Shown in pieces: positions 8,757-61,609 of a stretch of 64,000 nucleotides of DNA. This stretch comes from Macrostomum lignano (lineage: Eukaryota). A program made the position numbers and the translations under genes. Below the pieces are notes generated by a model that saw only the letters and a list, made by a program, of their open reading frames with translations, made no database searches and was not told where the DNA came from. Location: contig NIVC01002059.1 in the NCBI GenBank assembly GCA_002269645.1, positions 1-64,000 on the forward strand, given 5' to 3'. Position 1 is the stretch's first letter, and each line of letters begins with the position of its first letter.

Positions 8757-10148
8757 CTAGACCCAGGACAGCTGCAGTTGCTCGCCCTCCAACTCGATTG
8801 AAGTCTGCGTCGGATGCGGTGGCGGCTGCAGAAGCAGCGGCGGCTTCTCCTCGGATTTCGACAGCACCGATGCTCCGTTCTTCTCAGCATCGACCGCGTC
8901 GTCGCCGGCCTCGGCTTCGGCCGGCGCTGCAGATGAAAAGCCGCGCACCGACCGACGCAGGCGTCGACGCTGCTCCGACGTGCGTCGGGACGGCAGCTGC
9001 ACCGAGGCGATGAAGGCGTCGTCTCTGCCGGCTCGGTCTTGACCGCCGCCGACGCTGGCAGCCGCGGCGACCCCGAGTCGCCGGGTGCACAGCAGCCTGG
9101 CCAGCTCCCTGCGAAACAGGGCGCCGGTGGCCAGGTAGACAAAGAATTTCAGCGCATTGTGACTGACGGCCAGGCTGTTAACTATGTGACTAGCGGCCAG
9201 GTGAGTGAAATAGGTGCGCAGCTGGGGCAGCTGGCCGTCATCGATTTGCTGGCGCACCTGGGCGTCGGTGAGGTTGCAGGTGAGGCCCTCCAAGTCGGTG
9301 CTGACCAGGCTGATGCTGGCAAACAGCAGGGCGGTGACCGGCAGCATGGCGCCGATCTGGTAGAAGGAGACACTCAGCAGCGTCACCGTGGCTGCCGTCG
9401 GTTGTCGCCGCTGCGCCGACGTTGGCATGGGCGCAGACAGCTCGGACACGGTGGCCACCGCTCCGCTAGCCGCTGACCGCCTCACCTGCACCAGCACCAG
9501 CAGGTTGAAGGCCAAAATAGTCAGCGGTGCTGCGGCGAAGAACAGCACTTCCGTGATCTTCGTCCAAACGTTGTAGAACCTGTGCTGCATCGTGCCAGCC
9601 TCCAGAATCCGTTTGTCCTCTGTGCAGATCTGAACGCTAGCGTCGTAGTGATAGAAGCGGAGCTGCATCAGCGCCACCAGAAGGCAGCCGACAGACAGGC
9701 AGGCGGTGGCCGCCAGAGCCCGGCGGACGGTGCAGAGCCGGTGGCTGCTGAACGGATGGCAGATGCCGATGTAGCGCTCAACAGTGAAGCCGAGAATCAG
9801 AGCCGGGGACAGGTACTGCATCCAGATGCTGTAGACAGGGAAGGCCCAGCAGACGGGCCGGTTGTCGAGCACTCTAACGTCATAGTACTCTCGCAGATGC
9901 CAGGGCAGCTGCTGCATCAGCAGGAATGCCGCATCCAGTACAGCCAAGGCGCACAGGTAGATGCTGGAGCTGCTGCGCATCTGGCGACTGCTCCAGACGG
10001 CCAGGCTGAGGAGGCTGCCTGGAACGCCAAGCACCAGCCAAAGCGGCAGCAGAGTGCGGGCGAGGTGCACACTATAGGGCACGAATGCCAGGCTGAGGCT
10101 GAGACTGCTGCTGTGCCGGCTCAGAATGCCAGCGCAACTGTCGTTCAT
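8757..10148 (-). CDS. Intronless rhodopsin-class GPCR, invertebrate peptide-receptor-like (FMRFamide/myosuppressin/sex-peptide receptor type), 463 aa
   Basis: Seven hydrophobic segments. TM2 SSIYLCALAVLD, TM3 FTVERYIGICHPF, IL2 CTVRRA, TM7 SHNALKFFVYLATGALFRREL. Confidence 0.93.
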   Translation of the reverse strand: MNDSCAGILSRHSSSLSLSLAFVPYSVHLARTLLPLWLVLGVPGSLLSLAVWSSRQMRSSSSIYLCALAVLDAAFLLMQQLPWHLREYYDVRVLDNRPVCWAFPVYSIWMQYLSPALILGFTVERYIGICHPFSSHRLCTVRRALAATACLSVGCLLVALMQLRFYHYDASVQICTEDKRILEAGTMQHRFYNVWTKITEVLFFAAAPLTILAFNLLVLVQVRRSAASGAVATVSELSAPMPTSAQRRQPTAATVTLLSVSFYQIGAMLPVTALLFASISLVSTDLEGLTCNLTDAQVRQQIDDGQLPQLRTYFTHLAASHIVNSLAVSHNALKFFVYLATGALFRRELARLLCTRRLGVAAAASVGGGQDRAGRDDAFIASVQLPSRRTSEQRRRLRRSVRGFSSAAPAEAEAGDDAVDAEKNGASVLSKSEEKPPLLLQPPPHPTQTSIELEGEQLQLSWV

Positions 10149-12310: not shown

Positions 12311-14230
12311 GCGCACGAGTGTCTATGGCCATTATTTCAGCCCCTTACCTACTACGCAACGTCAACGTCTTTCATTTTACATTCTGCCCAAAAAAGGTTA
12401 TAATTGATATTACTATAGACATTACCCGCTGCTAGCGGGGGTGCGGGGGCAGAGCCCCCGCTGGGGGCGTGGGGGCGAACCCCCCACATTTTAACCATAG
12501 ACAAAATCAATCTTGCACGCTGGAGATGGTGAGGGGAGGGGGTAACGAAAGGAGATTACAATTGAAAGCTAGTTGCCACTATAAAAACAAAGCAATGGTT
12601 TCTCTAATCAACCCGTCGATTCTTCCTCCGCTTATGGACATGCGATACGCAACCGTCGACGGTTTGTCATCCGAAGAGGTGGCAATTGCAGCCATTTCTA
12701 GCAAGTGGGAAAGAGAGAACGAATGGCTGCTGCCCATGTTGGATGCAATTGCTGACACCGATTTAGAGAAGCTGCTAGCGACTGACCCGATGTCGAATGC
12801 AAGTCTGGATGAACTGGAGAGCCTTGCTCAGCAAGTTGAACGTGAGAATCAGTGTCAATCAACCATTGCAAAGGAATTGGCTTCCGTCGGTCGTTTCGAG
12901 AAGTTTCTGACTGACAATGGTGTACAACTGGATTTGTGCTATGAGCCATCAACTAACGGCTGCCGTGGAGGTGGCTACTACGGCCGACCCTCAAGTTGTA
13001 CGCAGTGAGGCAAGTGACCCAGTTGACGTGATCAACGATCCTACGTCGGGCTCGGTGCGCTGTGTGCGAGTTATTCCGGAAAATCGGAAGAATTTGAAGA
13101 TTAGAGCCAATGGTGACACCAACGTCGTTGAATTTGTATTTGAGTAGCATCTGATCGCAAGCGAAAAACTAGTAATGATATTAACCAATTTTCACTCGTT
13201 ATTTTCTTGTTGTCTAAAAATAAATTGCAATCCTGCACGTAAGATGCATTAGACCTAAAGGATAATTTGCCATAGACAACATCAATTCTGCACGCTTGGG
13301 CGTGCCAGATCAGCAATCCTGCACGCAGAATCAAATAAGAATGATATATTCCTGCACGGTCACGAGTGCGGGAATGACATCTGCACGAGTGCGCGCTAGC
13401 GCACGAGTGCACGATGTCCTTCACGCACGAGTGAACGTGAAGGAATTCCATTGTCGGATGATTCATCGTGCAGGAATGCACAAAACCGTGCAGGAATGCA
13501 TTTCTGCGCCTAATGCTTTTTCAGTGAGATTTTACCATAGACATCCATTCCTGCACGCAAAAGAGTGCAAGAATGCCATTCTTGCATGGAAAATCAGCCG
13601 ACAATGTCTATAAGACACAGCCTGGCCATTATTTCAGCGTGCCGGAAGCGGTCATTATTTCAGGGTAAGAGTCTGCGTGCGTGCGACTGCGTAAAGAGGG
13701 CGGTGGTTGGGCCATAGACTATAAATAAAAAAGCTGTTGGGCCATAGACTATAAATGAATAAGCTGATGATAGGCTTGAGCTGACGAGAAGTAGAGATAG
13801 TCTAGATCGAGGATTAAAAGAGCTGTCTTTTCTTTTTTCGGCTATGGCGCTTATCAATTGGTCGCATCTTCCCGTGGACAGCCTTAACGGAGTATCTAGA
13901 TATGAGTTAGAACTACTATCCGAGCTAAGTGCAAAGGAGCATCAACAGGATGTAGAATTGAGTTCATTTATCAAGTGGCTCGAAGATCCACTGGCTGATT
14001 CTGGAGACTTGCTCCTCCCGCCGAAGATGGAGTCAACCTTGACGCCGTGGAAATCCAGTCGTTGCCAAGTCGTGGCTAAATAGTTTTGACTATCATTTTT
14101 CTTCTCACTAATATTACTATTGTTATGATTATCATTACTGTGAACATTACTCCCTTATGCCAGTTAATATATGAATACTTTAACTAATCGTCTATGGTTC
14201 AAACGTCTGTTAAAGCTGAAATAATGGCCA
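12311..14230. mobile_element. Cluster of non-autonomous DNA-transposon-like sequence with CCATAGAC/GTCTATGG motifs and a possible Crypton-like ORF remnant
   Basis: CCATAGAC at 12495, 13270, 13535, 13712 and 13742; inverted at 12321 and 14190. Many TGCACG/CGTGCA repeats at 13215-13570. ORF 12469-13008 segment LESLAQQVERENQCQSTIAKELASVGRFEKFL resembles Crypton/DUF3504-family N-termini. No TSD found. Confidence 0.45.
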
Positions 14231-14880
14231 GTTGAGTTTGTCATTACGCCAGGCTGTGTCTTCTGGACAATGGCCGGGCAGAGGTAGAATCGGTCCAGAA
14301 ATTCACCTGGCAGACTATTTAGCCTACGTTTCGGCTCGGTTTGAAACTATAGCATTTGGCTTCTAGAGCAACATATTTTTTCTGCCTTCATCTTTCCAGT
14401 TTTCATTAGTGCGGACCAACCAATCGCTTGTGTTTTGCTTTGCCCGCGGGATGGACAAAGCGCAGAGTGACGGGAAGCGGCATTTCTGGCTCCGCTGCAT
14501 CTGGAGGCGGGTTACAAATTATCCAACGAGACCGCCTGTGCTATTCCGCCTCTCCTATGCTCTCAGCGCATGTGTTAAGTGTGTTTATGCAACACGCACT
14601 TCTGCTGCCACTATACAAGAGCCTCTCAGCTGTGAACAGTTTCTCGCAATAAGTCGAGCGCAGCAAGGGATGGGGACAAAGCTTACACGAAGACAAAAGG
14701 TTTTGGCTAGGGGTGGGGGAGAGAAAAGCTCGCTGTGAGAGCAAAGATGGAGGGGAGCAGAAATTGCTACACAGGCTGATGGAGGTGGAATGGGAGACGG
14801 GAAACCCTAGCCTGCAGCGGGAGCGGAGGCTGGAAGAAACCAGCTGTTTAGACTTCAGAAGATTTTTTTATTAGAGGCAG

Positions 14881-15113: not shown

Positions 15114-17210
15114 CAGATCAGAGCTGATACCCTCTCAGATCAGAGCTGATACCCTCTCAGATCAGAGCTGATACCCTCTCAGATCAGAGCTGATACCCTC
15201 TCAGACCAATTCAGTGAGTGATGATACCCTCTCAGACCAATTCAGTGAGTGATGATACCCTCTCAGACCAATTCAGTGAGTGATGATAACCTCTCAGACC
15301 AATTCAGTGAGTGATGATACCCTCTCAGACCAATTCAGTGAGTGATGATACCCTCTCAGACCAATTCAGTGAGTGATGATACCCTCTCAGACAAATTCAG
15401 TGAGTGATGATACCCTCTCAGACCAATTCAGTGAGTGATGACAACTTCTCAGACCAATTCAGTGAGTGATGATAACCTCTCAGACCAATTCAGTGAGTGA
15501 TGATACCCTCTCAGACCAATTCAGTGAGTGATGATACCCTCTCAGACCAATTCAGTGAGTGATGATAAACTCTCAGACCAATTCAGTGAGTGATGATACC
15601 CTCTCAGACCAATTCAGTGAGTGATGATAACCTCTCAGACCAATTCAGTGAGTGATGATACCCTCTCAGACCAATTCAGTGAGTGATGACAACCTCTCAG
15701 ACAAATTCAGTGAGTGATGATACCCTCTCAGACCAATTCAGTGAGTGATGATACCCTCTCAGACCAATTCAGTGAGTGATGATACCCTCTCAGACAAATT
15801 CAGTGAGTGATGATACCCTCTCAGACCAATTCAGTGAGTGATGATAACCTCTCAGACCAATTCAGTGAGTGATGATACCCTCTCAGACAAATTCAGTGAG
15901 TGATGATACCCTCTCAGACCAATTCAGTGAGTGATGATAACCTCTCAGACCAATTCAGTGAGTGATGATACCCTCTCAGACCAATTCAGTGAGTGATGAT
16001 ACCCTCTCAGACCAATTCAGTGTGTGATGATAACCTCTCAGACCAATTCAGTGAGTGATGATACCCTCTCAGACCAATTCAGTGAGTGATGATACCCTCT
16101 CAGACCAATTCAGTGAGTGATGATAACCTCTCAGACCAATTCAGTGAGTGATGATACCCTCTCAGACCAATTCAGTGAGTGATGACAACCTCTCAGACCA
16201 ATTCAGTGAGTGATGATAACCTCTCAGACCAATTCAGTGAGTGATGATACCCTCTCAGACCAATTCAGTGAGTGATGATACCCTCTCAGACCAATTCAGT
16301 GAGTGATGATAACCTCTCAGACCAATTCAGTGAGTGATGATACCCTCTCAGACCAATTCAGTGAGTGATGATAACCTCTCAGACCAATTCAGTGAGTGAT
16401 GATACCCTCTCAGACCAATTCAGTGAGTGATGACAACCTCTCAGACCAATTCAGTGAGTGATGATACCCTCTCAGACCAATTCAGTGAGTGATGATAACC
16501 TCTCAGACCAATTCAGTGAGTGATGATACCCTCTCAGACAAATTCAGTGAGTGATGATACCCTCTCAGACCAATTCAGTGAGTGATGATAACCTCTCAGA
16601 CCAATTCAGTGAGTGATGATACCCTCTCAGACAAATTCAGTGAGTGATGACACCCTCTCAGACCAATTCAGTGAGTGATGATAACCTCTCAGACCAATTC
16701 AGTGAGTGATGATACCCTCTCAGACCAATTCAGTGAGTGATGATACCCTCTCAGACCAATTCAGTGAGTGATGATACCCTCTCAGACCAATTCAGTGAGT
16801 GATGACAACCTCTCAGACCAATTCAGTGAGTGATGATACCCTCTCAGACCAATTCAGTGAGTGATGATACCCTCTCAGACCAATTCAGTGAGTGATGATA
16901 CCCTCTCAGACAAATTCAGTGAGTGATGATACCCTCTCAGACCAATTCAGTGAGTGATGATAACCTCTCAGACCAATTCAGTGAGTGATGATACCCTCTC
17001 AGACCAATTCAGTGAGTGATGATACCCTCTCAGACCAATTCAGTGAGTGATGAATGATACCCTCTCAGACCAATTCAGTGAGTGATGATAACCTCTCAGA
17101 CCATTCAGTGAGTGATGAATGATACCCTCTCAGATCATTTAGTGAGTGATGATAACCTCTCAGCTAATTCAGTGGGTGATGGATGATACCCTCTCAGATC
17201 ATTCAGTGAG
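15114..17210. repeat. 31-bp satellite (GATACCCTCTCAGACCAATTCAGTGAGTGAT), ~64 copies, preceded by 4 copies of a related 22-bp unit
   Basis: Period 31 (15192, 15223...). The 22-mer CAGATCAGAGCTGATACCCTCT lies at 15114-15202. Confidence 0.98.
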
Positions 17211-25716: not shown

Positions 25717-26875
25717 ACTGTAGTAAGTCCTCCGATATGAGTAATAAACTCAGCGGGCATCGAGAAAGCTATCAAAGAGCAGAGACCCAGCGGTAGGTTC
25801 TCTAGCTCCCAGAGCCGAGTGAAAGTTTTTATTGGCTTTGTAGTTTACCGAGGTCCCGATCAATAGCCGTATAAATTTTTAATGCTCGTGAGCCGCCCAA
25901 GTGGATTGCCTGCGACCTGACTGCTCTGTGGCTCAGCTGTTTAACCGTGCAGGCCACTTTGGTTCGACTGGTCAGGTGATCGTCTAGCATTGAATTGGCA
26001 GCCTGACATGAAACACGAGCTGTTTTGGTCTTTGCTGGCTTCCCACATGGCCTCTTGAGCAATGCAGTCCATAGTTACCCTACGGGAATTTATTTCAAGC
26101 CCAGATTTTGCAGATCTCTAATCAAATCAAATAAGGATTTGCGTAGGATACATAGGAAAAGCTGTAATCTCACCTGGTAGTATTCAAAATCAAAATCGTC
26201 AATCTTACTGGCAGGCAGGTGAAAAATTCATGATTACAAAAATTCCTTGAAATAAACGCTACTTACTACTCAGTGGCCATATCAATAAGTAGAGTAAAAT
26301 GCGTACGATTTGTCCAAATTTTATATTGAAGCGAATCAGTCTCGCTCAGCCTTGGGCGCACAGAATCCCGCATCCTCGCGGGATTTGCAGCCTCTCAGAT
26401 GAAGCTCAATTCTTTCAATATCCCAATTCTCATCATTTGGCCGACGCCTAATGGGAGAAATATAAAAGAAATGAGCTCCCTGTTCCTGAGCCTGAGACGG
26501 CTTGTCAATGGGCCGAATATCTCATTAGCAACTCGCTGGAAGAATCTGGCAAAGAACTGGCTCGACCAGTGCAGCCTGGCGCCCCCAGGGATGCTGGATA
26601 ATCGACATCTTCTGGAAGGCGCGCCGCAGCGCGTCGGCCTCAGGGGAAATGCGTTTTTTGCGCACTGATCAGGCGGAGACGACAGTCTCGTAAAGTATTG
26701 CAGAGTATTTCGAGGAGTAGAGCAGAGAAAGTTAGAATAGAGCATTTCACTGAAGCTAGAGTTGAGTGGGGTAGAGTGGAGGACTAGGGTAGATGGTAGA
26801 GATGGTTAGAGTAGACCGGAAAAATGTAGTAAAGTAGAGTCACTTCTCTACCTGCTACTTGACTGCCAATGATTT

Positions 26876-27494
26876 CGGGTTGAGGTTAGGGTTTAGGGTT
26901 TAGGTTACGGTTTAGGTTACGGTTTAGGTTACGGTTTAGGTTTGGGTTTGAGTTACAGTTTAGGTTGGGGTTTAGGGTTTATGTTAGGGTTTAGGGTTTA
27001 GGTTAGGGTTTAGGGTTTAGGTTACGGTTTAGGGTTTAGGTTACGGTTTAGGTTACGGTTTAGGTTTGGGTTTAGGGTTTATGTTAGGGTTTAGGGTTTA
27101 GGTTAGGGTTTAGGGTTTAGGTTAGGGTTTAGGTTAGGGTTTAGGTTACGGTTTAGGTTACGGTTTAGGTTACGGTTTAGGTTACGGTTTAGGTTACAGT
27201 TTAGGTTACGGTTTAGGTTACGGTTTAGGTTACGGTTTAGGTTTGGGTTTGGGTTGCAGTTTAGGTTGGGGTTTAGGGTTTAGGTTGAGATTTAGGTTTT
27301 AGGTTGGGGTTTAGGGTTTAGGTTGGGGTTTAGGTAGTTCAGGTTGGGTTTTAGGTTAGGGTTTAGGGTTTAGGTTAGGATTTAGGTTAGGGTTTAAGCT
27401 TTGATTTAGGTTTGGGTTTAGGTTACGGTTTAGTTTAGGGTTAAGGGTTTAGGTTCATGTTAAGGTTAGGGTTTAGTTTATGGTTTAAGTTAGA
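26876..27494 (+). repeat. Interstitial telomere-like array (TTAGGG/TTTAGGG/TTTAGG/TTACGG variants)
   Basis: G-rich on the + strand and degenerate toward the right end. Confidence 0.9.
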
Positions 27495-30033: not shown

Positions 30034-30075
30034 TGCACCTCGCGTCAGTGGTGCAGACCTTGATTAAATTTCTGA

Positions 30076-32321
30076 CAACTCCGTGTCCGAATCTGGTCAC
30101 TCTGTGTGAATCTGATTACTCTGTGTCCGAATCTAGTCACTCTGTGTCCGAATCTGATGACCCTGTGTCCGAACTGATCACTTTGTGTCCGAATCTAGTC
30201 ACTTTGTGTGAATCTGATTACTCTGTGTCCGAATCTGATCACTCTGTGTCCGAATCTGATCACTATGTGTCCGAATCTGATCACTATGTGTCCGAATCTG
30301 ATCACTCTGTGTCCGAATCTGCTCACTATGTGTCCGAATCTGATCACTTTGTGTCCGAATCTGGTCACTCTGTATCCGAATCTGATGACCCTGTGTCCGA
30401 ACTGATCACTATGTGTCCGAATCTGGTCACTCTGTGTGAATCTGATTACTCTGTGTCCGAATCTAGTCACTCTGTGTCCGAATCTGATGACCCTGTGTCC
30501 GAACTGATCACTTTGTGTCCGAATCTAGTCACTTTGTGTGAATCTGATTACTCCGTGTCCGAATCTGATCACTCTGTGTCCGAATCTGATCACTCTGTGT
30601 CCGAATCTGATCACTTTGTGTCCGAATCTGGTCACTCTGTGTCCGAATCTGATCACTTTGTGTCCGAATCTAGTCACTCTGTGTCCGAATCTGATCACTC
30701 TGTGTCCGAATCTGATCACTCTGTGTCCGAAGCTGATCACTCTGTGTCCGAATCTGATTACTCTGTGTCCGAATCTGGTCACTCTGTGTGAATCTGATTA
30801 CTCTGTGTCCGAATCTGATCACTATGTGTCTGAATCTGATCACTATGTGTCCGAATCTGATCACTGTGTCCGAATCTGATCACTCTGTGTCCGAATCTGA
30901 TCACTTTGTGTCCGAATCTGGTCACTCTGTGTCCGAATCTGATCACTCTGTGTCCGAATCTGATCACTCTGTGTCCGAAGCTGATCACTCTGTGTCCGAA
31001 TCTGATCACTCTGTGTCCGAATCTGGTCACTCTGTGTGAATCTGATTACTCCGCGTCCGAATCTGGTCACTCTGTGTGAATCTGATTACTCTGTGTCCGA
31101 ATCTGATCACTATGTGTCCGAATCTGATCACTGTGTCCGAATCTGATCACTCTGTGTCCGAATCTGATCACTTTGTGTCCGAATCTGGTCACTCTGTGTC
31201 CGAATCTGATCACTCTGTGTCCGAATCTGATCACTCTGTGTCCGAAGCTGATCACTCTGTGTCCGAATCTGATCACTCTGTGTCCGAATCTGGTCACTCT
31301 GTGTGAATCTGATTACTCCGTGTCCGAATCTGGTCACTCTGTGTGAATCTGATTACTCTGTGTCCGAATCTGATCACTATGTGTCCGAATCTGATCACTC
31401 TGTGTCCGAATCTGATCACTGTGTCCGAATCTGATCACTCTGTGTCCGAATCTGATCACTATGTGTCCGAATCTGATCACTATGTGTCCGAATCTGATCA
31501 CTGTGTCCGAATCTGATCACTCTGTGTCCGAATCTGATCACTCTGTGTACGAATCTGGTCACTCTGTGTCCGAATCTGATTACTCTGTGTCCGAATCTGG
31601 TCACTCTGTGTGAATCTGATTACTCTGTGTCCGAATCTAGTCACTCTGTGTCCGAATCTGATGACCCTGTGTCCGAATCTGATGACCCTGTGTCCGAACT
31701 GATCACTTTGTGTCCGAATCTAGTCACTTTGTGTGAATCTGATTACTCCGTGTCCGAATCTGATCACTCTGTGTCCGAATCTGATCACTATGTGTCCGAA
31801 TCTGATCACTATGTGTCCGAATCTGGTCACTCTGTGTCCGAATCTGCTCACTATGTGTCCGAATCTGATCACTATGTGTCCGAATCTGATCACTATGTGT
31901 CCGAATCTGATCACTGTGTCCGAATCTGATCACTATGTGTCTGAATCTGATCACTATGTGTCCGAATCTGATCACTGTGTCCGAATCTGATCACTCTGTG
32001 TCCGAATCTGATCACTTTGTGTCCGAATCTGGTCACTCTGTGTCCGAATCTGATCACTCTGTGTCCGAATCTGATCACTCTGTGTCCGAAGCTGATCACT
32101 CTGTGTCCGAATCTGATCACTCTGTGTCCGAATCTGGTCACTCTGTGTGAATCTGATTACTCCGTGTCCGAATCTGGTCACTCTGTGTGAATCTGATCAC
32201 TATGTGTCCGAATCTGATCACTATGTGTCCGAATCTGATCACTGTGTCCGAATCTGATCACTCTGTGTCCGAATCTGATCACTATGTGTCCGAATCTGAT
32301 CACTGTGACCGAATCTGATTC
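30076..32321. repeat. 20-22-bp satellite (TGTGTCCGAATCTGATCACTCT-type) with higher-order blocks, ~100 units
   Basis: Direct reading. It explains the ESDHSV/CPNLITL ORFs. Confidence 0.98.
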
Positions 32322-32774
32322 ACTTAAATCGGAATGCACTTAAACAAAAATAAGGAATGCACTTATTTTTGTTTGCACAACACCTACGCATAAATATTAT
32401 TAGTGCTATTTAGATGTAGCATATGTAGTACAGATGTTATGCATGTAGCATCAGAAATTTCATTATTTTTACTCTACCACTAATAACTTATTTAGACATG
32501 GCAACGATTTTTCAAATTTCCGGTTTCGATGCTTTTTAGAATTTTCGTTTTTTCGGAATTTCACGTTGCTTGGACGACTTACCACTTCATTGGTTATTAT
32601 TTGATGCACTTTTCAATGTTTTAGTTAGTCTGTACTTAAAAATATTATTACCAACTTCTTAAATATTTTTGGAAATTTCCATGTCATCACGGCTTTAAAG
32701 TTTCAAAACGATACCAGAGATCTTTTTTCATAATTTGACCCCAGTGTCCAAGCCGGAGCATTGTGCTTTCCTTT

Positions 32775-33177: not shown

Positions 33178-36100
33178 TCAAACAACTGTGCCGCTGGCTG
33201 AGGAGTGGCCGAGAATGGTGAGGTGGTCCCGTCCGCCATGGTCTGATGCTGACATCGCCGCTCTGTCATCAGTGAGACTGCGGTGCACCTGCAGGCGATG
33301 GGAGCAAGGCATTTGATGCCTCTTCGAATCCCAATACCCGAATCCCAATGTCCGAGTCGTAGTGCCCAAATCCCAATACCTCAATCCCAATACCCCAATC
33401 CCAATACCCCAATCCCAATACCCCAATCCCAAAACCCCAATCCCAAAACCCCAATGCCAATACCCCAATCCCAATACCCCAATCCCAATACCTCAATCCC
33501 AATACCCCAATCCCAATACCCGAATTCCAATGTCCGCAGTGCTACCAATCTGAGTTTCTCACCAGTCCAATCGCGGCTGAAGCCAGCAGCACCATGGCGA
33601 AGGCGCTGTACAAGACTTCGAAGCCCAGCCAGCCCAGCAGGAGGCCCGCGTACTGACTGCCGCAGAACATGCCCAGGTTGAAAGCACCGGTGTACAGACC
33701 ATTCACGGCTCCGTACTCGGCTGTGAACAGCCGGTCAGCCAGGTAGTTTAACGAGGGAAAACACGTGCAGGTGAACAGAGCCAGGGCGATGCGGAGTACC
33801 TGACAATGTTTTTGTGAAAAAAATCTACTGAGGGCAGTTGGTAACTACTGAGGGGAGCTGGTAACTACAGAGAAGAGCTGGTAACTACTGAGAAGAGCTG
33901 GTTACTACTGAGGAGAGCTGGTAACTACTGAGGGGAGCTGGTAACTACTGAGGGAGCTGGTAACTACAGAGGAGAGCTGGTAACTACAGATGAGAGCTGG
34001 TAACTACTGAGGAGAGCTAGTAACTACTGAGAAGAGCTGGTAACTACAGAGGAGAGCTGGTTACTACTGAGGGGAGCTGGTTACTACTGAGGGGAGCTGG
34101 TTACTACCATAGATACTATAAACAGTATCTATATTGTTTATAGTATCTGTGGTTACTACTGAGGGGAGCTGGTTACTACCATAGATACTATAAACAGTAT
34201 CTATATTGTTTATAGTATCTGTGGTTACTACTGAGGAGAGCTGGTAGCTACTGAGGAGAGCTGGTAACTACTGAGGAGAGCTGGTAACTACTGAGGAGAG
34301 CTGGTAACTACTGAGGAGAGTTGGAAACTTCTGAGAAGAACTGAAAATCCTCAAGTTTCTCACTGATTCGGGCAGAGCAGCAAACCAGATGCTGCGGGTG
34401 GCGCCAACAACCGGGTACAGCAGCATGCCGATGCCGAATACAACCAGGCTGGGAAACAGGACGCGCCATCTGGCGAGCGGCCTGGCTGCCAGCCAGCCGG
34501 AGCAGGCGTACTGCACCCCGAACTGCAGGCAGGTGGAGGCCAGCGCCACCACGGCCATCTGCCAGAGCGAGCCGGCCAGAGTGTCCTGCATAAAGCTGGG
34601 CGCCGTGGTGAACACCGCGCCAAGTCCGAAGTGGATGAGGAAGTCGGCCATCAGGATGGTGCCGACGTACCTGTTGGTGGCGAGGCGCCACAAGGTGCGA
34701 GCTCCCACCGGAGTGGCTCTGCAATAGGTCAGTTGTTTTCTGAATGACTCTAGCGATTCTTATCGAGTTTCAGAGTCATTGCAGGCAACACAGGTAAAAT
34801 AGGAAACAAATGACTCTGAACAACTCTAAAACGACGAAGTATCACGGTACAAGTCGCCAAAAAATCGCCTAAGAGTCAATTTGAGGCGTTTTTTGTCTGC
34901 GACTATAAAACGACTTCTATAATGACTCTGGGGGCGTACGAGCATAGAATCGTATCTGAGTCGCTGTACAATCACTGAGTTGCGTCTAAAGCGCCTCTGC
35001 GCCACTTTATATGAATTGCGCTCGTAGAACCGCATTTCGTATTATTCTATATATTCTACTTGAGTTAGTAGAAAGTTAAGCGCTAACACGACGACTATTG
35101 GACGACTTTTTATTGACTATTTTACGATTCTACAATTCACGTGACTTTATAGACTTTTTTACAGCTCAAAAAACTGTAAATGCGACGGATTGGCGACTGT
35201 TGAGTCATGAGCGTATCATATGAGTCGCCAACTAGTCAATTGTTTCCAATGACTCTAGCGATTTTTGTCACTTGTCACTAAGTGATCGGCGAGTACTTGG
35301 AAAAAAGGAGATCACTGTTTGAGTCAAGTAGCTGTAGAGCCACTTCTGTTTCAACCGATAAAATCGCTCTAAATTTAAAGTTAAATCAACATTAAACGTC
35401 TTTTGATTTTATAGCAATGGCGATCGGAAAGAAGTGAGCAATCCTTCCAGTGTTTTACGGACAGAAACAGCGTCGAGTTTACCCGATCTCTTTCAAAGAC
35501 GCCGAAGTAGACTCTCTCCGCTTGGCTTTTTTCTCCTCCTCTTCGTTGTCTTTATCCCTGTTGTCTTTGTTGCCGCGGTCCCTCCTGGCATGAGAGGCGG
35601 AGTCCGCAGGCGTTCGGACTGCCAGCCGGAGCGCCATGTCCAGCAGGGAGAGGCCGCCGAGCACCAGGAACGGGCTGGCTCTGCCGAACCACTGCGCCAG
35701 GACGGCGCCAAACGGGAAGCCCATGATGAGGCCGAAGCTGAGGCCGCCAAAAGCTACGGCGGCTGCTTTTGCTCGTTCGACTTCGTCGCCGGCGAAGGTG
35801 GCAGCCAGCAGGGCGAGGCCGGCCACGGTGGACAAGCTAGAGGAGGCGGCCTGCAGCAGGCGGGCGATCAGAAGAATTGGATAGTTGGGACTGAAGCCGA
35901 ACATGCCAGCCGTTACCTGCATGGTGAGACGGGTTGGTCACTTATTTACGATGAGTAATTTACGTTGTTGGCTTCTGATGAAAGTACAATTTATGCCCTA
36001 TGCTGAAATATTCAATACTTGGGTATGGAAAGAGACCGTAAAAATGATTATGATTTATAATAATTGTTTGGAAAATCTTATAACTTGTTTTTTGTTTGAA

Positions 36101-39598: not shown

Positions 39599-42500
39599 AC
39601 AATTGAAAATACAAACAAGCAGCTATCAAGAGTTGGGGCTTAGAATGTTTTCAATTCTGCTCTATCTTCTACTCTATGTGTCATCATTTTTGATTGGCCT
39701 GGCAGTCATTTGGTATCTGACTGAGTGAGTAACTTTGCATTTAAGTATTTCATTGTTTTCAAACATACATTTTGTAAATCTTTGAATTTTTATTTAACTA
39801 TTCAATTTCTAGTAAGACAAACTGGATTCGCTATGAAGAAAATAGCTCAGAATCAAGTGAGTCAGTAAGCAGGTCTGCAGAGCCACATTGCACAGTCTGT
39901 GGAAATTCTAACTGCTATAGGCCAAGGTAAGTAAGCAGCTTTGATGATGAAAACAGCTTTACAATAGAGTTCCACTGTAATAGATGTGGCTATGGGAAGT
40001 TATGAATATAGATGTTTTTTATATGTGGCACATTGTGTAGATGGGTGGTGGGGGGCTGAAGTTAAGATAAATGCAATCCTAGCCATTTTTCTTGTACCAT
40101 TAATAAATTAGATGTTAATGAGTGTTAGGTTAAACTATTGCTGTCACTCTTTACTTCATCACTTTTACTATATTATAGTAAAGAATAAAAGAAGTCTTTC
40201 CATTGGATTGTTTATTATTAATACTTTTGAAAGTTTAAGGGAAATTAATTAGCTACGGACATGGAACTCTACCTCGTACTTTACAATGATGCAGTTTGTA
40301 TTTTATTACTGTAACTATTCGATTGACTTCAGAAGTGCATCGACCAGCTCGTTTCCGCCCTATTTGAACATCAACTTTACTGTTGACAAGCCAGTCAGCG
40401 ACGCTTTGTTCGAGGTGAGTTCAGCCTCTGTTTTACTCAGCTTGCACACCCAATTAAGTATCATAAAGTCTAGCAAATGAAGCTTTATTATTTGTTTATT
40501 ACATCTTTTCATTTACAGTTTTTTGAGCTCGTGATAGACAGATACATTCTCTGTTGGTATAAGTGAGTTAAATATTATTGTATTGAGCCTTCAAACTGAG
40601 TACTAACCACAGATACTAGAATAACTAGATGGGCCACTCAGCACATTTGCATGCTAGCTACTTTCAGTTCAGTAGCAAGTTAAACAGAAGCATTTTAATG
40701 TATTTTTAAAGCCAAGGCTCATTTATTGGCTCTTACCCACAGCTTAAACCCTCCAACCGCGCCTTTCCACACTACCCCCCTCGCCCCGCCCCAATCTTTA
40801 TTGCCTTTCTCGGAATTCCAGCCTAAAGCTGCCATGTACATTTCAGTGGACTGGCCAATGTACATTATTGCTGAGCCAATTAGCAAGCTGTTTACGCCTG
40901 CAAGCTTGGGCTTCTAAAATTATCAAAGTCGTTTCAGCTGGCTTTATTTTCATAAAATAGCTTATGTATTCTTCTTTGCTACTGAACTGAAAGTAGAAAG
41001 CTGTTTTTCTAAGTAAATATGCCCGAGTGGATCATCTAGTTATTTTAGTATCTGTGTACTGACAAGTAAAATATTTAATTAATTGTGTTTAAAATGTTCC
41101 AGAGAGATTAGCTCTCGCGAAGATTTCGTAAATGATGTTCGTTTGCACCTGAAGTACGCCGTCTCTGCACTGCTGCATCGGTTCTCTCGGGTATGTTGAT
41201 TTAATAAACTTATTGCTATACCAATAATAATGTTTCATTTTCAAGTCTTAAATTTCAGAAATTCACTTGATTTTCAGTGCGATATCGGCCAGTTTGTTGA
41301 AGACCAGGTGATACCGGGAGCCGTGGCGCACTACCAGGTGTGCAACGATGTGCTTCGCAGAGGTTTGTCGTCTATTAATAATTCAAAATTCCAAGTACGA
41401 GTCAGTGCCCGAGAGTCTTCATAAAATTTTATGGAAAAACTTCCTGACTCGTCCTGAAAATCACTGGAACCGTTCCCGAAAATCACTGGAACCGTTCCCG
41501 AAAATCACTGGAACCTTTCCCGAAAATCACTGGAACCGTTCCCGAAGATCACTGGAACCGTTCCCAAAAATCACTGGAACCTTTCCCGAAAATCATTGGA
41601 ACCGTTCCCGAAGATCACTGGAACCGTTCCCAAAAATCACTGGAACCTTTCCCGAAAATCATTGGAACAGTTCCCGAAAATCACTGGAACCTTTCCCGAA
41701 AATCATTGGAACCTTTCCCGAAAATCATTGGAACCGTTCCCAAAAATCATTGGAGCCGTTCCCGAAAATCACTGGAACCTTTCCCGAAAATCATTGGAAC
41801 CGTTCCCGAAAATCACTGGAACCGTTCCCGAAAATCACTGGAACCGTTCCCGAAAATCATTGGAACCGTTCCCGAAATCATTGAAACCGTTCCCGAAAAT
41901 CTTTGGAACCGTTCCCGAAAATCACTGGAACCTTTCCCGAAAATCATTGGAACCGTTCCCGAAAATCACTGGAACCGTTCCTGAAAATCACTGGAACCGT
42001 TCCCGAAAATGAGTGGAACCGTTCCCGAAAATCACTGGAACCGTTCCCGAAAATGATTGGAACCGTTCCCGAAATCACTGGAACCGTTCCCGAAAATGAT
42101 TGGAACCGTTCCCGAAATCACTGGAACCGTTCCCGAAAATCACTGAAACCGTTCCCGAAAATCACTGGAACCGTTCCCGAAAATGAGTGGAACAGTTCCC
42201 AAAAATCATTGGAACCGTTCCCGAAAATCACTGGAACCGTTCCCGAAAATCATTGGAACCGTTCCCGAAATCATTGAAACCGTTCCCGAAAATCTTTGGA
42301 ACCGTTCCCGAAAATCACTGGAACCTTTCCCGAAAATCATTGGAACCGTTCCCGAAAATCACTGGAACCGTTCCCGAAAATCACTGAAACCGTTCCCGAA
42401 AATCATTGGAACCGTTCCCAAAAATCACTGGAACCTTTCCCGAAAATGATTGGAACCGTTCCCGAAAATGATTGAAACAGTTCCCGAAAATCATTGGAAC

Positions 42501-45500
42501 CGTTCCCGAAAATCACTGGAACCTTTCCCGAAAATGATTGGAACAGTTCCCGAAAATCATTGGAACCTTTCCCAAAAATCATTGGAACCGTTCCCGAAAT
42601 CACTGGAACCGTTCCCGAAATTCTCCGGAACCGTTCCCGAATTTGAAATTTGACAATTTGGATCTGGCAAGGACTGACACCGCACCCCGCCATCCGCAGG
42701 CAACCTGGGCTCCACATCCAACTTTGAGTCGCTGATGCTGCGCAACATGCGAGGCCACCTGCACGTGGCCATGAAGGATCGGACCGCAGAATATGACTAT
42801 GTGAAAGGCCTTGTGTCCAAGGTACTGCCGCATCTGCTTCACCCCACGGCCAAGGGCTCCAAGTAAGCATTGATTGTTTCACATATCCAGCCCAGTCAGC
42901 AATTTCAATAATAACCCTGTTTTCCCGCTTTCAGCTGAAAATTATGATTTGAGATCCCATTTCCCATATCTCTTCCTATAATCCTAGAGTCATATCCCCG
43001 CTCCTTATAATCCTACAGAATCCCGTATCTCTTCTTCCCATAATCCTACAGAATCCCATATTCCCGTTTCCCAACAGAATCCCATATCCCCGCTTTATAA
43101 CAGAATCCCATAACCCCTTTTCCCATAATCCTAGAATATCCCATATCCCCGCTACCCATAATCCTACAGAATCCCATATCCCCGCTTCCCATAATCCTAC
43201 AGAATCCCATATCCCCGCTTCCCATAATCCTACAGAATCCCATATACCCGCTTCCCATTATCCTACAGAATCCCACATCCCCGCTTCCCATAATCCTACA
43301 GAATCCCATATCCCCGCTTCCCATAATCCTACAGAATCCTACATCCCCGCTTCCCATAATCCTACAAAATCCCACATCCCCGCTTCCCATAATCCTACAA
43401 AATCACATATCCCCTCTTCCCTAAATCGTACAGAATCCCATATCCCTTTTCCCGATAATCCTACAGATTATGCTCGTCACAACAAACCCAATGAACCGTC
43501 CCCAGGAGCCTAGAGATGCTACTAACGGAGATCCTGACCGTCGCCGTGCTGATGCCGGCGCTGGACTCGCTAACGAATCCGCACACCGTCAACCGGTTGA
43601 TCCTGGAGGCGCTGGACGATTTCCCGCTGCCGCAGCCGAGCGGCCAGCCAGTCGCCAGGGTGCCTGTGCTGCACCGGTACACGGAGATGGCTATGGCTGC
43701 CAGCAAAGCCGAATGGCAACAGCAGCAGCAGCAGCCGCAGCAGGGCCTGCAGCCTCCCAGCAATATTGGCAGCGTGTACGAGCATCACGGCCTTCGGCAG
43801 GCTTTCATCGATTTTATGAAATTGTGCGACAGTCTGGAGCTGATGATTTTCTACGGCGATCTGGGTGAGGGGCCGGCTGGCTTGCCTTCTGTACCTCCTT
43901 TTCATTTTTTGTCTGTTAAACTAGTAAATCGCTTTTCAAACTGGAGAATTCTTATACCGCAAAGGAATTGCTTTCACACTGCTTGGGAATCGCCTGTTGC
44001 GCTGCTGGGGAATTAGCTCTGTCTGCGGGAATCCCCTCTTAGTCGGGGGAATCCCCTCTTAGTTGGGAGAATCACCTCTGAGTCGGGGGAATCCCCTCTT
44101 AGTTGGGAGAATCACCTCTTAGTCGGGGGAATCCCCTCTTAGTTGGGAGAATCACCTCTGAGTCGGGGGAATCCCCTCTTAGTTGGGAGAATCACCTCTG
44201 AGTCGGGGGAATCCATCTCAGTCTGGGAATCCCTTATGAGTCTGGGGAATCGCCTCTTACATTGCTAGAGAATTACCTCAGTCTGGAGAATCTTTTCTCA
44301 ATGATTTGGCTTGTAACTTCTCCAATTGAATCGCCATTCTCCGCAGAGATGATCAACAAAGACCTGGTGGCGGCTGAGATTCGCGACAACACCTGTCAGA
44401 GAATCTACTCGGACATTGAGCGAATCTACGAGTCGCTTCTGCATCACAACAAGGACATCATAGCGGCTCTGCAGCTTCCAGATGAGTTTATGAACTGCCT
44501 GCGAAATGGTGAGCCGGTTTTATCTTTTTACCTGCTCTCTTCTTAAATTAGGGGTGTAATAAATTTACCCTGTATTTTATTATCCAGTTGTCAAAGATGG
44601 CGCCAGTTCCGTGCCCAACCTTCGGACTAGCTCGGCTTGGTTCATGTGAGTTTGAAAAGTGATTTTTTTCTTAATTTGAGTTGGAAAAAATTGGCCACTG
44701 TTAAGGTCAGCTATGAGCACAGTTGGTCACTGCTAAGGTCAGCTATGAGCACAGTTGGTCACTGCTAAGGTCAGCTATGAGCACAGCTGGTCACTGCTAA
44801 GGTCAGCTATGAGCACAGTTGGTCACTGCTAAGGTCAGCTATGAGCACAGTTGGTCACTGCTAAGGTCAGCTATGAGCACAGCTGGTCACTGCTAAGGTC
44901 AGCTATGAGCACAGCTGGTCACTGCTAAGGTCAGCTATGAGCACAGCTGGTCACTGCTAAGGTCAGCTATGAGCACAGTTGGTCACTGCTAAGGTCAGCT
45001 ATGAGCACAGCTGGTCACTGCTAAGGTCAGCTATGAGCACAGCTGGTCACTGCTAAGGTCAGCTATGAGCACAGTTGGTCAATTCCCGAGCATTGTGAAG
45101 CAAGAGGCTTGCAACACAATTACGCTCGTATAATATAAATATAAACATCCTTCTTTCCCCGCCATTGCAGAGCTCACGAGCGGGTGTGCAACTTTCTGGA
45201 GACTCACTACCTGCCAGCCTTCGCCAATAGCGACTGCTACATGAAGCTGGTTGTGCTGGAGGAGTCGGGCTCCAGGGACAGCGGTCAAGGTTCGGCTAAA
45301 GCCAAGTAAGCAAGGCGCCGACTTAATGTGATGCAAATGCAATTATTAAAAGCTCGAAATTTCATATTTTATCCACTTGCGCTAAGCTTAGAGATTTTAT
45401 AATATATTTTTTAGTAGTACTGAAGCCCTTGTTTTTTATTATCTAAATGTTGTGAAGCTTTACTATATAGTATATAATGTTAAGGGTCACTGTCGCAGCA

Positions 45501-51689: not shown

Positions 51690-52800
51690 TCTAATGAGCC
51701 TCACCGAATAAGGAACCAGTGGCTCACTGAAGAGTGAAGTTCTAATGAGGCTCACTGAAGAATGAAGTTCTAATGAGGCTCACTGAAGAATGAAGTTCTA
51801 ATGAGGCTCACTGAAGAATGAAGCTCTAATGAGGCTCACTGACGAATGAAGTTCTAATGAGGCTCACTGAAGAATGAAGTTCTAATGAGGCTCACTGAAG
51901 AATGAAGTTCTAATGAGGCCCACTAAAGAGTGAAGCTCTAATGAGGCTCACTGAAGAATGAAGCTCTAATGAGGCTCACTAAGTAGTGCAGTTCTAATGA
52001 GGCTCACTGAAGAGTGAAGTTCTAATGAGGCTCACTGAAGAATGAAGTTCTAATGAGGCTCACTGAAGAATGAAGCTCTAATGAGGCTCACTGAAGAATG
52101 AAGTTCTAATGAGGCTCACTGAAGAGTGAAGTTCGAATGAGGCCCACTGAAGAGTGAAGTTCTAATGAGGCCCACTAAAGAGTGAAGCTCTAATGAGGCT
52201 CACTGAAGAATGAAGCTCTAATGAGGCTCACTAAGTAGTGCAGTTCTAATGAGGCTCACTGAAGAGTGAAGTTCTAATGAGGCTCACTGAAGAATGAAGT
52301 TCTAATGAGGCTCACTGAAGAATGAAATTCTAATGAGGCTCACTGAAGAATGAAGCTCTAATGAGGCTCACTGAAGAATGAAGCTCTAATGAGGCTCACT
52401 AAGGAGTGAAGTTCTAATGAGGCTCACTGAAGAATGAAGCTCTAATGAGGCTCACTGAAGAATGAAATTCTAATGAGGCTCACTGAAGAATGAAGTTCTA
52501 ATGAGGCTCACTGAAGAATGAAGTTCTAATGAGGCTCACTGAAGAATGAAGCTCTAATGAGGCTCACTGAAGAATGAAGCTCTAATGAGGCTCACTGAAG
52601 AATGAAGCTCTAATGAGGCTCACTAAGGAGTGAAGTTCTAATGAGGCTCACTGAAGAATGAAGCTCTAATGAGGCTCACTGAAGAATGAAATTCTAATGA
52701 GGCTCACTGAAGAATGAAGTTCTAATGAGGCTCACTGAAGAATGAAGCTCTAATGAGGCTCACTGAAGAATGAAGCTCTAATGAGGCTCACTGAAGAATG
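51690..52800. repeat. 28-bp minisatellite (TCTAATGAGGCTCACTGAAGAATGAAGT), ~39 copies
   Basis: Period 28 (51721, 51749). Confidence 0.97.
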
Positions 52801-57960: not shown

Positions 57961-59564
57961 TTGCTGTCACGGAAAAGCCAGTGTCACAACAAAAAGCCTG
58001 AATGTCGTAGAAAATTGCAGAAAGCATTCGCTGCATTCATTCGATCGGAAACAGCAGCAGCAGCATCTATTGATAGTATTCGAATCTGAATTAGCAACAA
58101 GTATACAACACAGCGGTGGGTTGGATTGGTGGCTGGCTGAAAACGAAAACTGCTACAAGCAAGGGGTGGCATCAGTTCTACATTCTTGCGATCACTGCTG
58201 CTAGTAAGCCTTGCTTACAGTCGGACAATAAGGATTTGGAATTGCTTCTTACGCTTCACTAAGACTGTTTCCTGTAATAATCCTGTCTGTTTCCCTTGCT
58301 TTTCTCTCTCACAGTCACAGTCTCTGGCTACTCTTCATTGCTCAGCCTTATTTGGCATTTCCAGTAAGCTAGCTGTGAACACTTCTGTGTGAACAGACAG
58401 ACACTCTGAGTACAGGCCCAACGGGCCCATGAGCCCGCGTGCACAAGTGTTGCAACTGCACTGTACAATAGCTGTTAAATGGCTTGGCATCAAGGCTGAG
58501 CAGCCAGCCCAGCAAGCACCTCAGAGTAATAAGAATGCATTATTAAAGCCCGTCCTTTTAGCTGCATGTTAGTCAGGTTAGTTCTACAATTCTACACCCT
58601 GAAAAATTACCATTGGGTTTACATGGGCTAAAGGGCTTGGTGAAAGAAAGAGAAAGCCGTGCTAAAAATCTTAGGCAATGCGGGGAGACGCAAGGGGGTG
58701 GCAGTGAGTGAAGGCAGGCAGGCGGGCAGGCAGCGGTTTCTAGATCAACTATGTGCGCAGCGAGACAAACCAACTGGAGGGTGGGGAGGGGCATATATGT
58801 GAGAAAGATTAAAGCGCTCCATGTGCTTGCTAAAACTAAGAGAGACAGGGGGGTTAGGGGGGCTAAGAGGGCGGGCGTGACTGTATCAGCTGATGATCAA
58901 GTCCAGCGCGGCGTGTGCACAAGCCATGTGCGCTACCAGTAGTAGGACCCCGTGTGGGGGGAGAGAGGGCCAGCCCTGACTGTCCAATCCGAGCGCGCCT
59001 GGCGAACAGCTGATTGACCGACTATTTCTCACCCCCACACACGCCACCGACCCCGCGGCACGGCCTGTCTGCCTGCCTTCTACTATAGTATAGGCCGTAT
59101 ATATATATTAGCTCGCCCTTAACAATTTGAGCCAGTTTTCCGGCAAACTATCTTTTTATATATGCCGTGTAATATGGCTTATCAGCATTATACTATAGGA
59201 GTTTGGCCTTGCCTCCCTGTCGGTAAGTTAATCGGTAATTAAAGCGAATGAAAGAGCAGCGCGAATAGCATTCGGCTGTGCAGCTCCGAATTGGGCATTT
59301 CGAAGCGATTTATATTATCGTGTTGCCATGGCAACATGGTTCCTGCTAGACTGGGAACCAGCGAGCTGCCTGATCAAGAGCTGCACGGCTTGTGCCATAG
59401 TCGCCAAAGATAGCCAATTAAAATTAATTCCACATCTTTTCTGATTCCGGTATAGCTAACAGCGTCTGGCAGAAAGCCAAGGACTGAATTAGTTTTTTGA
59501 AAAAATCCAGTACATACTGATAGTAGAGTGTAAAATCTGTCTCCTCTCTCGTATCTATTCCAAC

Positions 59565-61609
59565 CACAGATACTATAAACACTAGATAGGCCACTCAGGC
59601 TAATTTTCTGGGCAAGTTTTTTATTCTACTTTCTGCTTAGTAGCAATGAAAGGAAGCAACAGTATTATTTGCTAAATTAGACAAATCGAGTGACTGTTTT
59701 TAAGACATCGTTTTGCTAACGCCATAAACAACTAACTTGTTTTGTGCAGTAATGGTGTACATTAAGACGCGACAGACAGTGTGCAATGCCGCTATCTTTC
59801 AAAGTGGAGGAAGGGGGGTAGTCTGGAATAGGGTTAATATCAGTTTCGTATAAGGCAGGGTGAGTGGATCGATAATTTAGGCCTACTGGTGGTGGGATAG
59901 AAAATAAAGGACTGCACATAGCTAGCCTGGGTTAGGGGTGGGGTGGGGGTTGAGAGGTTGTGGGTTAGAAAATTTGGGGGTGGCGAATCGTGCTTAAATA
60001 CAAGCTTATATAGATGAACAGGACAAGAGTCAGAGTTAAAGAAAGTTCGAGTGCATACTAGCTTTTCTATCTAATCTTGTACTCGAGAAATGTTTTGATT
60101 CGAACCACTGCTGTGCTCCCACTTGCACGAGCTTTGTACTAGTGCTATTAACATCCGAGAAAGAAAAATCCGTTGCGAATGCATAAATTACCAAAAGATG
60201 ACACTGGCGAAGCGCTGGCAGCAGCTACTACAGGAGCGTGGATATTGATCTTTATAAACAATTAAATCACGGGGCCTCCGTGTGTTCAGCTTGCACTTTA
60301 TGGACGAGGCCTACTGCTGCCTTACAAAGTGCCACGGATGTGCAAGACATCTGTTTTCGCTGGGACGCAATCCCACACCAAGAGTTGATGCTGCCTCGGC
60401 TCGTTCAAATAGACCAGCTACCCTCTGTGCAAAGGACTGATAAACGATGAAGAGGCAGACGACATGTACCCTCCAGTGCTGGGGCCAATTAGCAATCTAT
60501 CTGCAGCCGAGCCTGCGACTTGCCTGCTGCCAGTGCTGTGGCAGAGCAACCTTCGGCTACCAGATTCTGCGCCGAGAACAGCTGTTGCGGCTGAAAGCTC
60601 TCACCTCTGCAGCCGATTCGCGGGTTCCAAGCGCTAGAGGCAAAGATCAAGCGGCTGCAGCAACGATCCCGAAAGTGACAGGCGAATCAAGCGGCTGCAG
60701 CGGCAATCCCGAAAGTGACAGGCGAATCAAGCGGCTGCAGCGGCAATCCCGAAAGCGACAGGCAAATCAAGCGGCTGCAGCGGCAATCCCGAAAGCGACA
60801 GGCAAATCAAGCGGCTGCAGCGGCAATCCCGAAAGCGACAGGCAAATCAAGCGGCTGCAGCGGCAATCCCGAAAGCGACAGGCAAATCAAGCGGCTGCAG
60901 CGGCAACTCTCGATGGTCAAGGCAAGTGCAGCGCAGTCGTGCATCCATGGACTGTGGAGGCGTGGCTAGCGCAGCTTCCAGCGGTCGACTGGGCGGCAGG
61001 GCGCTCGCAGTCAGGGGTGCTCTGGTCAAAGGATGTCATCTCATCAGCAGCTCATTGCAGCTGCACCACAAAAGTCCTGCTGCTTATCGGCTGCCTGTTA
61101 CGAAACCACTGAGGATTGGCTCCATCGGATACATCCCTGGACCTTGAAGTGGCGCATTCGCCAGTTTTTTTCATCTGTTGGGCCGTTCTGAATGCTGCCT
61201 CTGAACAAGGGCGACTGGCGACCCTGTTCTTCGACAGCACGCTGCGAGTTTCACAAACAGATGAGCTGATTAAGATGAGAAATCTTTCTATTTTGCTTCA
61301 CGAATATGGATTATGGAGTATATGATATAGCTCGTATTTGCTAAATATACAATAGTAGACTGCAATAATATAGCCTTCTATGCAATCTAAAGCATTCACA
61401 ATGTTGCTTTGAATTGTGGAAAGTATAATTATAAGTTTCTTTTTGCAAAAAATCAATACAATTGCTGCATTGCATTCATCTGTTTTTTTATTTTAAAAAA
61501 ATATAAATAACGCTAAAATGTTTTTACTACTACTAAGCAGAAAGTAGAGTAAACTGTCGTGTTGTGAAAATTAGCTGGAGTGGCCTATCTAGTGTTTATA
61601 GTATCTGTG
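59565..61609 (+). mobile_element. Non-autonomous P-element-superfamily DNA transposon, 2,045 bp
   Basis: TIRs CACAGATACTATAAACACTAGATAGGCCACTC..GCTAATTTTC, extending imperfectly to ~85 bp. Perfect 8-bp TSD ATTCCAAC (59557-59564, 61610-61617). Frameshifted THAP (CCAPTC, MHKLPKD, AKRW, VCS-LHF, RWDAIP; ~60100-60385) and transposase N-terminus (WSKDVISS-LQLHHKSPAAYRL-LRNH, RLATLFFD; ~61020-61235). Confidence 0.92.
60645..60905. repeat. 40-bp tandem repeat inside the P-element coding remnant, ~6 copies
   Basis: GAAAGCGACAGGCAAATCAAGCGGCTGCAGCGGCAATCCC; the reading frame cycles every unit. Confidence 0.95.

Follow-up and report, generated by a model that had tools for sequence, protein, structure and literature searches.

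A tandemly duplicated transposon scar in a minisatellite of Macrostomum lignano is probably the product of a P-type staggered excision

A 20-bp minisatellite of the flatworm Macrostomum lignano includes two aberrant monomers, each of which carries the same 44-bp insert between two copies of an 8-bp sequence. Which event generated this insert, and what can be deduced from it about the enzyme involved? We addressed these questions on a 64-kb stretch of DNA (64,000 nucleotides, referred to as the window), which contains the minisatellite together with two members, E1 and E2, of the transposon family to which the ends of the insert belong. The initial annotation of this DNA had described the insert as a P element excision footprint with exactly 17 nt of each terminal inverted repeat (TIR), captured and duplicated by the minisatellite. 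The layout of the array is as follows (TSD, target-site duplication).

33825..34343, no strand assigned: minisatellite of ~25 units of 20 bp, GGT[A/T]ACTACTGAGGRGAGCT (TRF; monomer-by-monomer split)
34100-34107, no strand assigned: TSD GTTACTAC, left copy of unit 1, 8 bp
34108-34124, plus strand: left arm CATAGATACTATAAACA, 17 nt of element tip, 16/17 to E1, with T at base 3
34125-34134, plus strand: filler GTATCTATAT, 10 nt
34135-34151, minus strand: right arm TGTTTATAGTATCTGTG (minus-strand reading CACAGATACTATAAACA), 17 nt of element tip, 17/17 to E1
34152-34159, no strand assigned: TSD GTTACTAC, right copy of unit 1, 8 bp
34172-34231, no strand assigned: copy 2 of TSD-17-10-17-TSD (TSD 34172-34179, 44-mer 34180-34223, TSD 34224-34231)

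Between 34100 and 34231 the arrangement GTTACTAC, CATAGATACTATAAACA (17 nt), GTATCTATAT (10 nt), TGTTTATAGTATCTGTG (17 nt), GTTACTAC is present in two identical copies, and the 44-mers at 34108-34151 and 34180-34223 do not differ at any position. Comparison of the arms to the tips of E1 (59565-61609) showed 17 matches out of 17 on the right and 16 out of 17 on the left (C3>T), while base 18 is mismatched on both arms, which have G and A where E1 has C. The annotation had claimed that an 8-bp TSD encloses 17-nt arms derived from the tips of the element at 59565 and that the homology to its TIR stops at base 17 on both sides; every one of these sequence statements was verified, with exact coordinates. 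Each of the two aberrant monomers is 52 bp longer than the 20-bp units, and since 52 is the sum of 44 and 8, the extra GTTACTAC is a true target-site duplication. The match of the arms together with this extra GTTACTAC identifies the 44-mer as a truncated tip pair of the 59565 family, as had been proposed. Formally, the duplication could be read as 9 bp (GGTTACTAC) by including the last G of the right arm; however, the 8-bp reading is favoured because the full element E1 has a perfect 8-bp TSD. When the whole window was scanned for an 8-bp direct repeat followed by a palindrome (arms of at least 12, with at most one mismatch) and by the same 8-bp repeat, the structure in the minisatellite was the sole return. 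The 17-mer tip, with up to 3 mismatches allowed, has 8 matches in the window, compared to 0.12 expected.

The elements to which the arms of the scar are related have the following features.

59565..61609, no strand assigned: E1, non-autonomous element of 2,045 bp, TIRs of 44-47 nt (94%)
59557-59564 and 61610-61617, no strand assigned: TSD of E1, ATTCCAAC, perfect 8 bp
59620-59651 and 61522-61553: subterminal inverted repeat of E1, 32 nt, about 56-87 nt from each end
60646-60906: internal 40-bp minisatellite of E1
40608..41056, no strand assigned: E2, diverged member of 449 bp, with a 32-nt TIR and the same subterminal block as E1

None of the six frames of E1 contains a Pfam domain. E2 is flanked by GTACTAAC and (G)TACTGAC, which represent a decayed TSD. 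The tips of the family begin with CACAGATACTA... and read CACAG in E1, in E2 and in the right arm of the scar, and CATAG in the left arm, base 3 being a pyrimidine in each. The conservation of the TIR was deduced from an alignment of four ends, which belong to two diverged subfamilies (those of E1 and E2). Bases 1-11 are invariant in this alignment, bases 12, 15 and 16 differ between the subfamilies, and bases 17-23 (ACTAGAT) and 27-32 (CCACTC) are again invariant; in addition, a block CTACTTTC.G.T.AGTAG is conserved ~60-80 nt in from all four ends. Both arms of the scar break at base 17/18, within the invariant block of bases 17-23, which implies that they were truncated and did not merely diverge.

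Within the 64-kb window no member of the family was found beyond E1, E2 and the scar, and none was found in ~64 kb around the M. lignano homologs of an ASC channel (3 loci). The ASC channel itself is encoded in the window by an ORF of 590 aa, 75% identical to an M. lignano protein, the next best matches being schistosome proteins. A 35-bp minisatellite of M. lignano near the ASC homologs contains CACAGACACTATA, which was judged to be a chance resemblance. The TIR pattern had no match in the JGI metagenomes or in IMG/VR, and the one match to the tip-pair pattern in public collections, an AT-rich hairpin that has no CACAG tips, is irrelevant.

The filler between the two arms originates from the left arm. 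Its first 8 nt (GTATCTAT) are the exact reverse complement of left-arm bases 2-9 and include the T3 variant that is specific to the left arm (CATAG, compared to CACAG in the right arm). The annotation's view of the filler as a templated insertion is borne out for 8 of its 10 bases, an 8-nt match to a template having a chance of about 0.002-0.005; no template accounts for the last two (AT). A second alignment is possible for the TATCTA within the filler: with a 2-nt indel, it coincides with TIR bases 19-24 where they naturally lie. This alternative alignment would result in a right arm of about 24 nt, which fits partial repair synthesis and not 'exactly 17', so that a right arm of exactly 17 nt is the most parsimonious reading and not the sole one. 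A derivation of the filler from the interior of the element by incomplete synthesis-dependent repair was considered and rejected: the interior of neither E1 nor E2 contains any word of 9 nt or more taken from the filler itself, and the only interior E1/E2 match that touches the filler is a 10-mer lying mostly in the right arm.

The scar was subsequently duplicated within the array. TRF detected a period of 72 bp (2.3 copies, 98% match), and with the 44-mers being identical this confirms that the 72-bp period arose from repeat expansion. The two 72-bp units differ by 1 base, within the monomer part; the difference is explained by unequal exchange (a GGGG-type monomer upstream and a GGAG-type monomer downstream) and requires no mutation after the duplication. 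Filler and TSD are identical in both copies, from which the order of events follows as insertion, loss of the element body and tandem duplication, in agreement with the order given in the annotation. The scar-bearing array is one excision event, duplicated once, and the duplication looks young because its two copies are identical.

We propose that the scar was generated by a P-type excision with a 17-nt staggered cut and by end joining with templated insertion, and was then duplicated through unequal exchange, a course of events that we consider probable. The 5' strand is cut by the Drosophila P transposase 17 nt inside the TIR, leaving 17-nt 3' overhangs on the donor (PMC7776569). In M. lignano, an E1-family DNA transposon would have inserted in one minisatellite unit and duplicated the 8-bp target GTTACTAC. 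At its excision, as in Drosophila, the transposase would have cleaved the two strands at different places, the 3' strand at the tip of the element and the 5' strand within the inverted repeat, 17 nt from the tip, and each donor flank would have retained a 17-nt 3' overhang of element sequence. Such overhangs cannot pair with each other because they have the same sequence, and they would have been joined through alternative end joining of the polymerase-theta type. The left overhang may have folded back at its 3' end (...AAACA), with A17 on T10, its bases 9 to 2 serving as the template for 8 new nt; after the addition of two further bases (AT), this end would have been joined to the intact right overhang. 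No stable self-fold was found for the isolated 17-nt overhang, which means that the snap-back would begin from a single base pair. Finally, the 44-bp scar, both TSDs and one monomer would have been duplicated once, by unequal exchange or slippage, resulting in the 72-bp period.

The same structure could in principle derive from a deletion of the element body in situ, by slippage, by random breakage followed by end joining or by abortive gap repair, where no transposase cleavage is involved and the 17/17 arms are a coincidence. Cut-and-paste families commonly give rise to internally deleted derivatives, both E1 and E2 are derivatives of the non-autonomous kind, and the arms would differ in length if TATCTA were matched to TIR bases 19-24. 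We nevertheless regard a deletion of this kind as unlikely. Both breakpoints fall at 17/18, in the most conserved block of the TIR, for which the probability is about 5e-4 if breakpoints are uniform within the 44-nt TIRs. Moreover, the junction has no microhomology that could account for slippage, and a reverse-complement filler from the adjacent tip is characteristic of free ends that were joined. Some selection bias is possible in the P-type reading of the scar, as the number 17 was known beforehand to the reader who made the annotation.

The junctions sequenced after alternative end-joining excision of the Drosophila P{wa} element have the layout TSD-17-insert-16/17-TSD, for instance acccagac-CATGATGAAATAACATA-TATACCG-TATGTTATTTCATCATG-acccagac, with inserts described as copied from the neighbouring sequence, either directly or as its reverse complement (Chan, Yu & McVey 2010, PMC2895639). 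The scar shares this layout: an 8-bp TSD, a tip of 16-17 nt, a templated insert (6-15 nt in the fly), a second tip of 16-17 nt and the TSD. While the fly junctions were induced, that of the flatworm is natural, fixed and the outcome of a single event. The TIRs are of different length (about 44 nt in the flatworm and 31 bp in Drosophila P) and are unrelated in sequence except for the CAT/AT-rich tips. The single flatworm event may thus be taken as an indirect hint of the same 17-nt staggered cut as that of the fly P element. The annotation went further in concluding that this non-insect P family uses the same cleavage; the correspondence of the layout with the P{wa} junctions speaks for it, on the basis of one event in a putative P family.

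Alternatively, the scar may be a true excision footprint left in a non-P family by another transposase with a long stagger, e.g. that of an uncharacterised 8-bp-TSD lineage. We find this distinctly unlikely, even if neither the window nor the probe search (see below) linked a transposase to E1-type TIRs. hAT and P elements have in common the 8-bp TSD and a target of the T2/A7 type; non-autonomous derivatives are frequent among hAT elements, the tips of which read 5'-YARNG. To our knowledge, the cleavage chemistry has never been mapped for several transposon superfamilies. The scar and E1 do share with hAT elements (Ac, hobo, Hermes) the 8-bp TSD and a target whose second base is T and whose seventh is A. 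Their CACAG and CATAG tips, on the other hand, are unlike YARNG and resemble P elements at base 3, a pyrimidine in the flatworm tips, in Drosophila P (CATGA) and in zebrafish Pdre2 (CATAC) alike. Cleavage by the hAT, MULE and Transib enzymes that have been characterised generates hairpins on the flanking DNA, and the element is released with its ends complete (PMC5499845). No TIR bases should therefore remain at the donor site in these systems, and hAT scars contain altered flank bases, in contrast to the flatworm scar, which kept 17 nt of the TIR per tip together with intact TSDs. In Tc1/mariner footprints, each end contributes only 2-3 nt and the duplication is TA. The flatworm scar is similar to them insofar as a staggered cut leaves transposon bases between the TSD copies, and differs in the 17 nt that remain of each end and in a duplication of 8 bp. 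In the literature consulted, a 17-nt stagger is described for the P transposase of Drosophila only (PMC7776569); as far as the accessible parts of the THAP9 and Pdre2 reports extend, they do not give the site of the 5'-strand cut. Among flatworms, THAP9/P-type RNase H-like homologs were reported exclusively from Macrostomida (bioRxiv 10.64898/2026.09.03.748810), which makes a P-type enzyme plausible in Macrostomum and argues against a non-P enzyme.

A third process would be the transposition into the minisatellite of a mobile 44-bp micro-MITE that formed elsewhere and made the TSD by itself. Its tips are intact and the 8-bp TSD is perfect, and extreme miniaturisation of DNA transposons via microhomology-mediated repair has reportedly been observed in one study, which counts in favour of such an element. 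The 44-mer, however, has neither TIR bases 18-44 nor the subterminal block, both of which are conserved in the four ends, and it thereby has not kept the cis sequences of the family. Drosophila P requires internal transposase-binding sites beyond the TIR (PMC7776569). In the 64-kb window we found two tandem copies with the same TSD in place of the dispersed copies with different TSDs that characterise a MITE, and a mobile 44-mer is consequently very unlikely. A chance palindrome or an assembly artefact is hardly credible, for although the region is highly repetitive (tandem repeats cover about 29% of the window), the 17-mer tip is found far more often than expected (8 matches against 0.12) and the structure is unique in the window with an extra length of exactly 44 + 8 bp.

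If the scar is a P-type excision product, as we consider probable, the question arises of whether the E1 family itself is a P element. The annotation had presented it as such, as mobile in recent times and as a candidate new active transposase system, and here we do not follow it. The P superfamily is defined by a transposase with a THAP domain, an RNase H-like domain and a GTP-binding insertion (PF05485, PF21787, PF21788, PF21789). A probe for the Drosophila P transposase, which had been validated against PDB 6p5a, had no tblastn match in the window, and a Pfam search of 10 further ORFs of the window detected neither a transposase nor any other mobile-element domain. The same probe had 121 matches among 5.8 billion proteins, with nearly all of the named ones from arthropods and none from Macrostomum, in a search that required shared 5-residue words and therefore misses distant flatworm homologs. 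With no transposase in the window, three features connect the family to the P superfamily, namely its 8-bp TSD, its CAY tips and the single scar. The TSD of E1 and of the scar has the 8 bp of the superfamily (7-9 bp), that of E2 being decayed; E1 also has both terminal and subterminal inverted repeats, a feature that is not specific to P elements; and neither arm of the scar exceeds the 17 nt that a P-type cut would leave, an indirect indication that comes from one event and admits one alternative alignment. Nothing in the window dates the excision, and the window shows no autonomous copy. It is doubtful at best that Macrostomum has in the E1 family a P-superfamily transposon that is active today and whose transposase makes the Drosophila-type 17-nt cut.

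Outside insects, the closest comparison is Pdre2 of the zebrafish (zfTHAP9), a P element that, according to the accessible part of its report, has an 8-bp TSD, 13-bp TIRs and an encoded transposase, and for which deletions of flanking donor DNA are reported while the 5'-strand cut site is not described there (PMC10983969). On the same partial basis, the flatworm family resembles Pdre2 in its 8-bp TSD, in the terminal and subterminal inverted repeats and in tips of the CAT... type. In contrast to Pdre2, E1 has no transposase, but its family left a donor scar that suggests the position of the cut.

No feature of the P transposase is as peculiar as its 17-nt staggered cut, and a 17 + 17 scar in a flatworm would extend both this cut geometry and the fly-type templated repair across very distant animals. 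Were the E1 family indeed an active P family, the 17-nt cleavage geometry would be ancestral to the bilaterian P/THAP9 enzymes, and the family might supply the native transposon tool that this flatworm model lacks, where transgenesis relies mainly on random integration (PMC5730564). With a single event and an enzyme that we infer, this is a lead rather than a result, and the E1 family is worth tracing to an autonomous copy.

The scar also shows that a minisatellite is able to preserve and amplify a repair junction. Similarly to other higher-order minisatellite units made by insertion, the aberrant unit was spread by unequal exchange and gave rise to a longer period (72 bp in a 20-bp array); compared to those units there is nothing unusual here, with one duplication only. 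Tandem repeats account for about 29% of the window as a whole. The array fills most of a putative intron of 564 bp (about 33800-34363, minus strand) in a gene whose flanking exons are listed below.

34364..34759, minus strand: upstream exon of the host gene, a VMAT/SLC18-like MFS transporter (Pfam MFS_1)
33545..33799, minus strand: downstream exon of the host gene (Pfam MFS_1, E 1e-8)

The splice site of the upstream exon (GAATCA/GTGAGA) and the acceptor (...TTGTCAG/GTACTC) are predicted from the nucleotide sequence. Further 5' exons of the gene match solved VMAT2/VAChT structures (E 5e-36).

The three insertion sites of the transposon family in the window, those of the 44-bp scar, of the diverged 449-bp member E2 and of the 2,045-bp non-autonomous element E1, all fit nTnnnAAC (3/3; the scar on the other strand):

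34152-34159, read on the minus strand, scar TSD, GTAGTAAC
40600-40607, E2 insertion site, GTACTAAC
59557-59564, E1 insertion site, ATTCCAAC

Two of the three are identical at 7/8 positions and are seen as inverted pairs in the window. Because the three sites look alike, the sequences suggest either a strong target preference of the family or an insertion of E2 into the relic of a similar repeat unit.

Minisatellites with units of 12-62 bp occupy approximately 29% of the window (for example 30071-32324, 15191-17210, 41452-42641 and 51721-52800), and the unit sequence is private and unrelated in nearly every array. Many of them lie between coding segments, as if filling introns. Since E1 itself carries an internal 40-bp minisatellite (60646-60906; 6.5 copies, 97%), the expansion of tandem repeats takes place within the transposon too.

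A 671-bp segment (13602-14272) bounded by 25-nt inverted repeats (CAATGTCTATAAGACACAGCCTGGC, 88%) may be another miniature element; a clear target duplication is not visible at this segment.

Two likenesses to the family tip were found outside the window. A 35-bp minisatellite of M. lignano (GCA_002269645.1), present in two sequences around ASC homologs (L003, 2560-3340; L004, 1215-1985), has a unit start, CACAGACACTATA, identical to the tip at 12/13 positions. It has neither a TIR partner nor a TSD, about 0.08 chance matches of this type are expected by a hand estimate, and the likeness was judged to be a chance resemblance. The perfect AT-rich hairpin AGATACTATAAACA...TGTTTATAGTATCT of a metagenome contig (L002, OAVR01000007.1, 4278-4319), the surrounding AT-rich sequence of which is taken to be bacterial, has 14 nt in common with the tip but lacks the CACAG end, and is unrelated.

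The window also contains about 600 bp of interstitial degenerate telomere-like repeats (TTAGGG/TTTAGGG variants, 26873-27493) and three long, uninterrupted ORFs, in contrast to which the adjoining VMAT-like transporter gene is intron-rich:

8757-10148, minus strand, rhodopsin-type GPCR, 463 aa
17568-19340, minus strand, ASC/DEG-ENaC channel, 590 aa
47121-48140, plus strand, PX-domain protein
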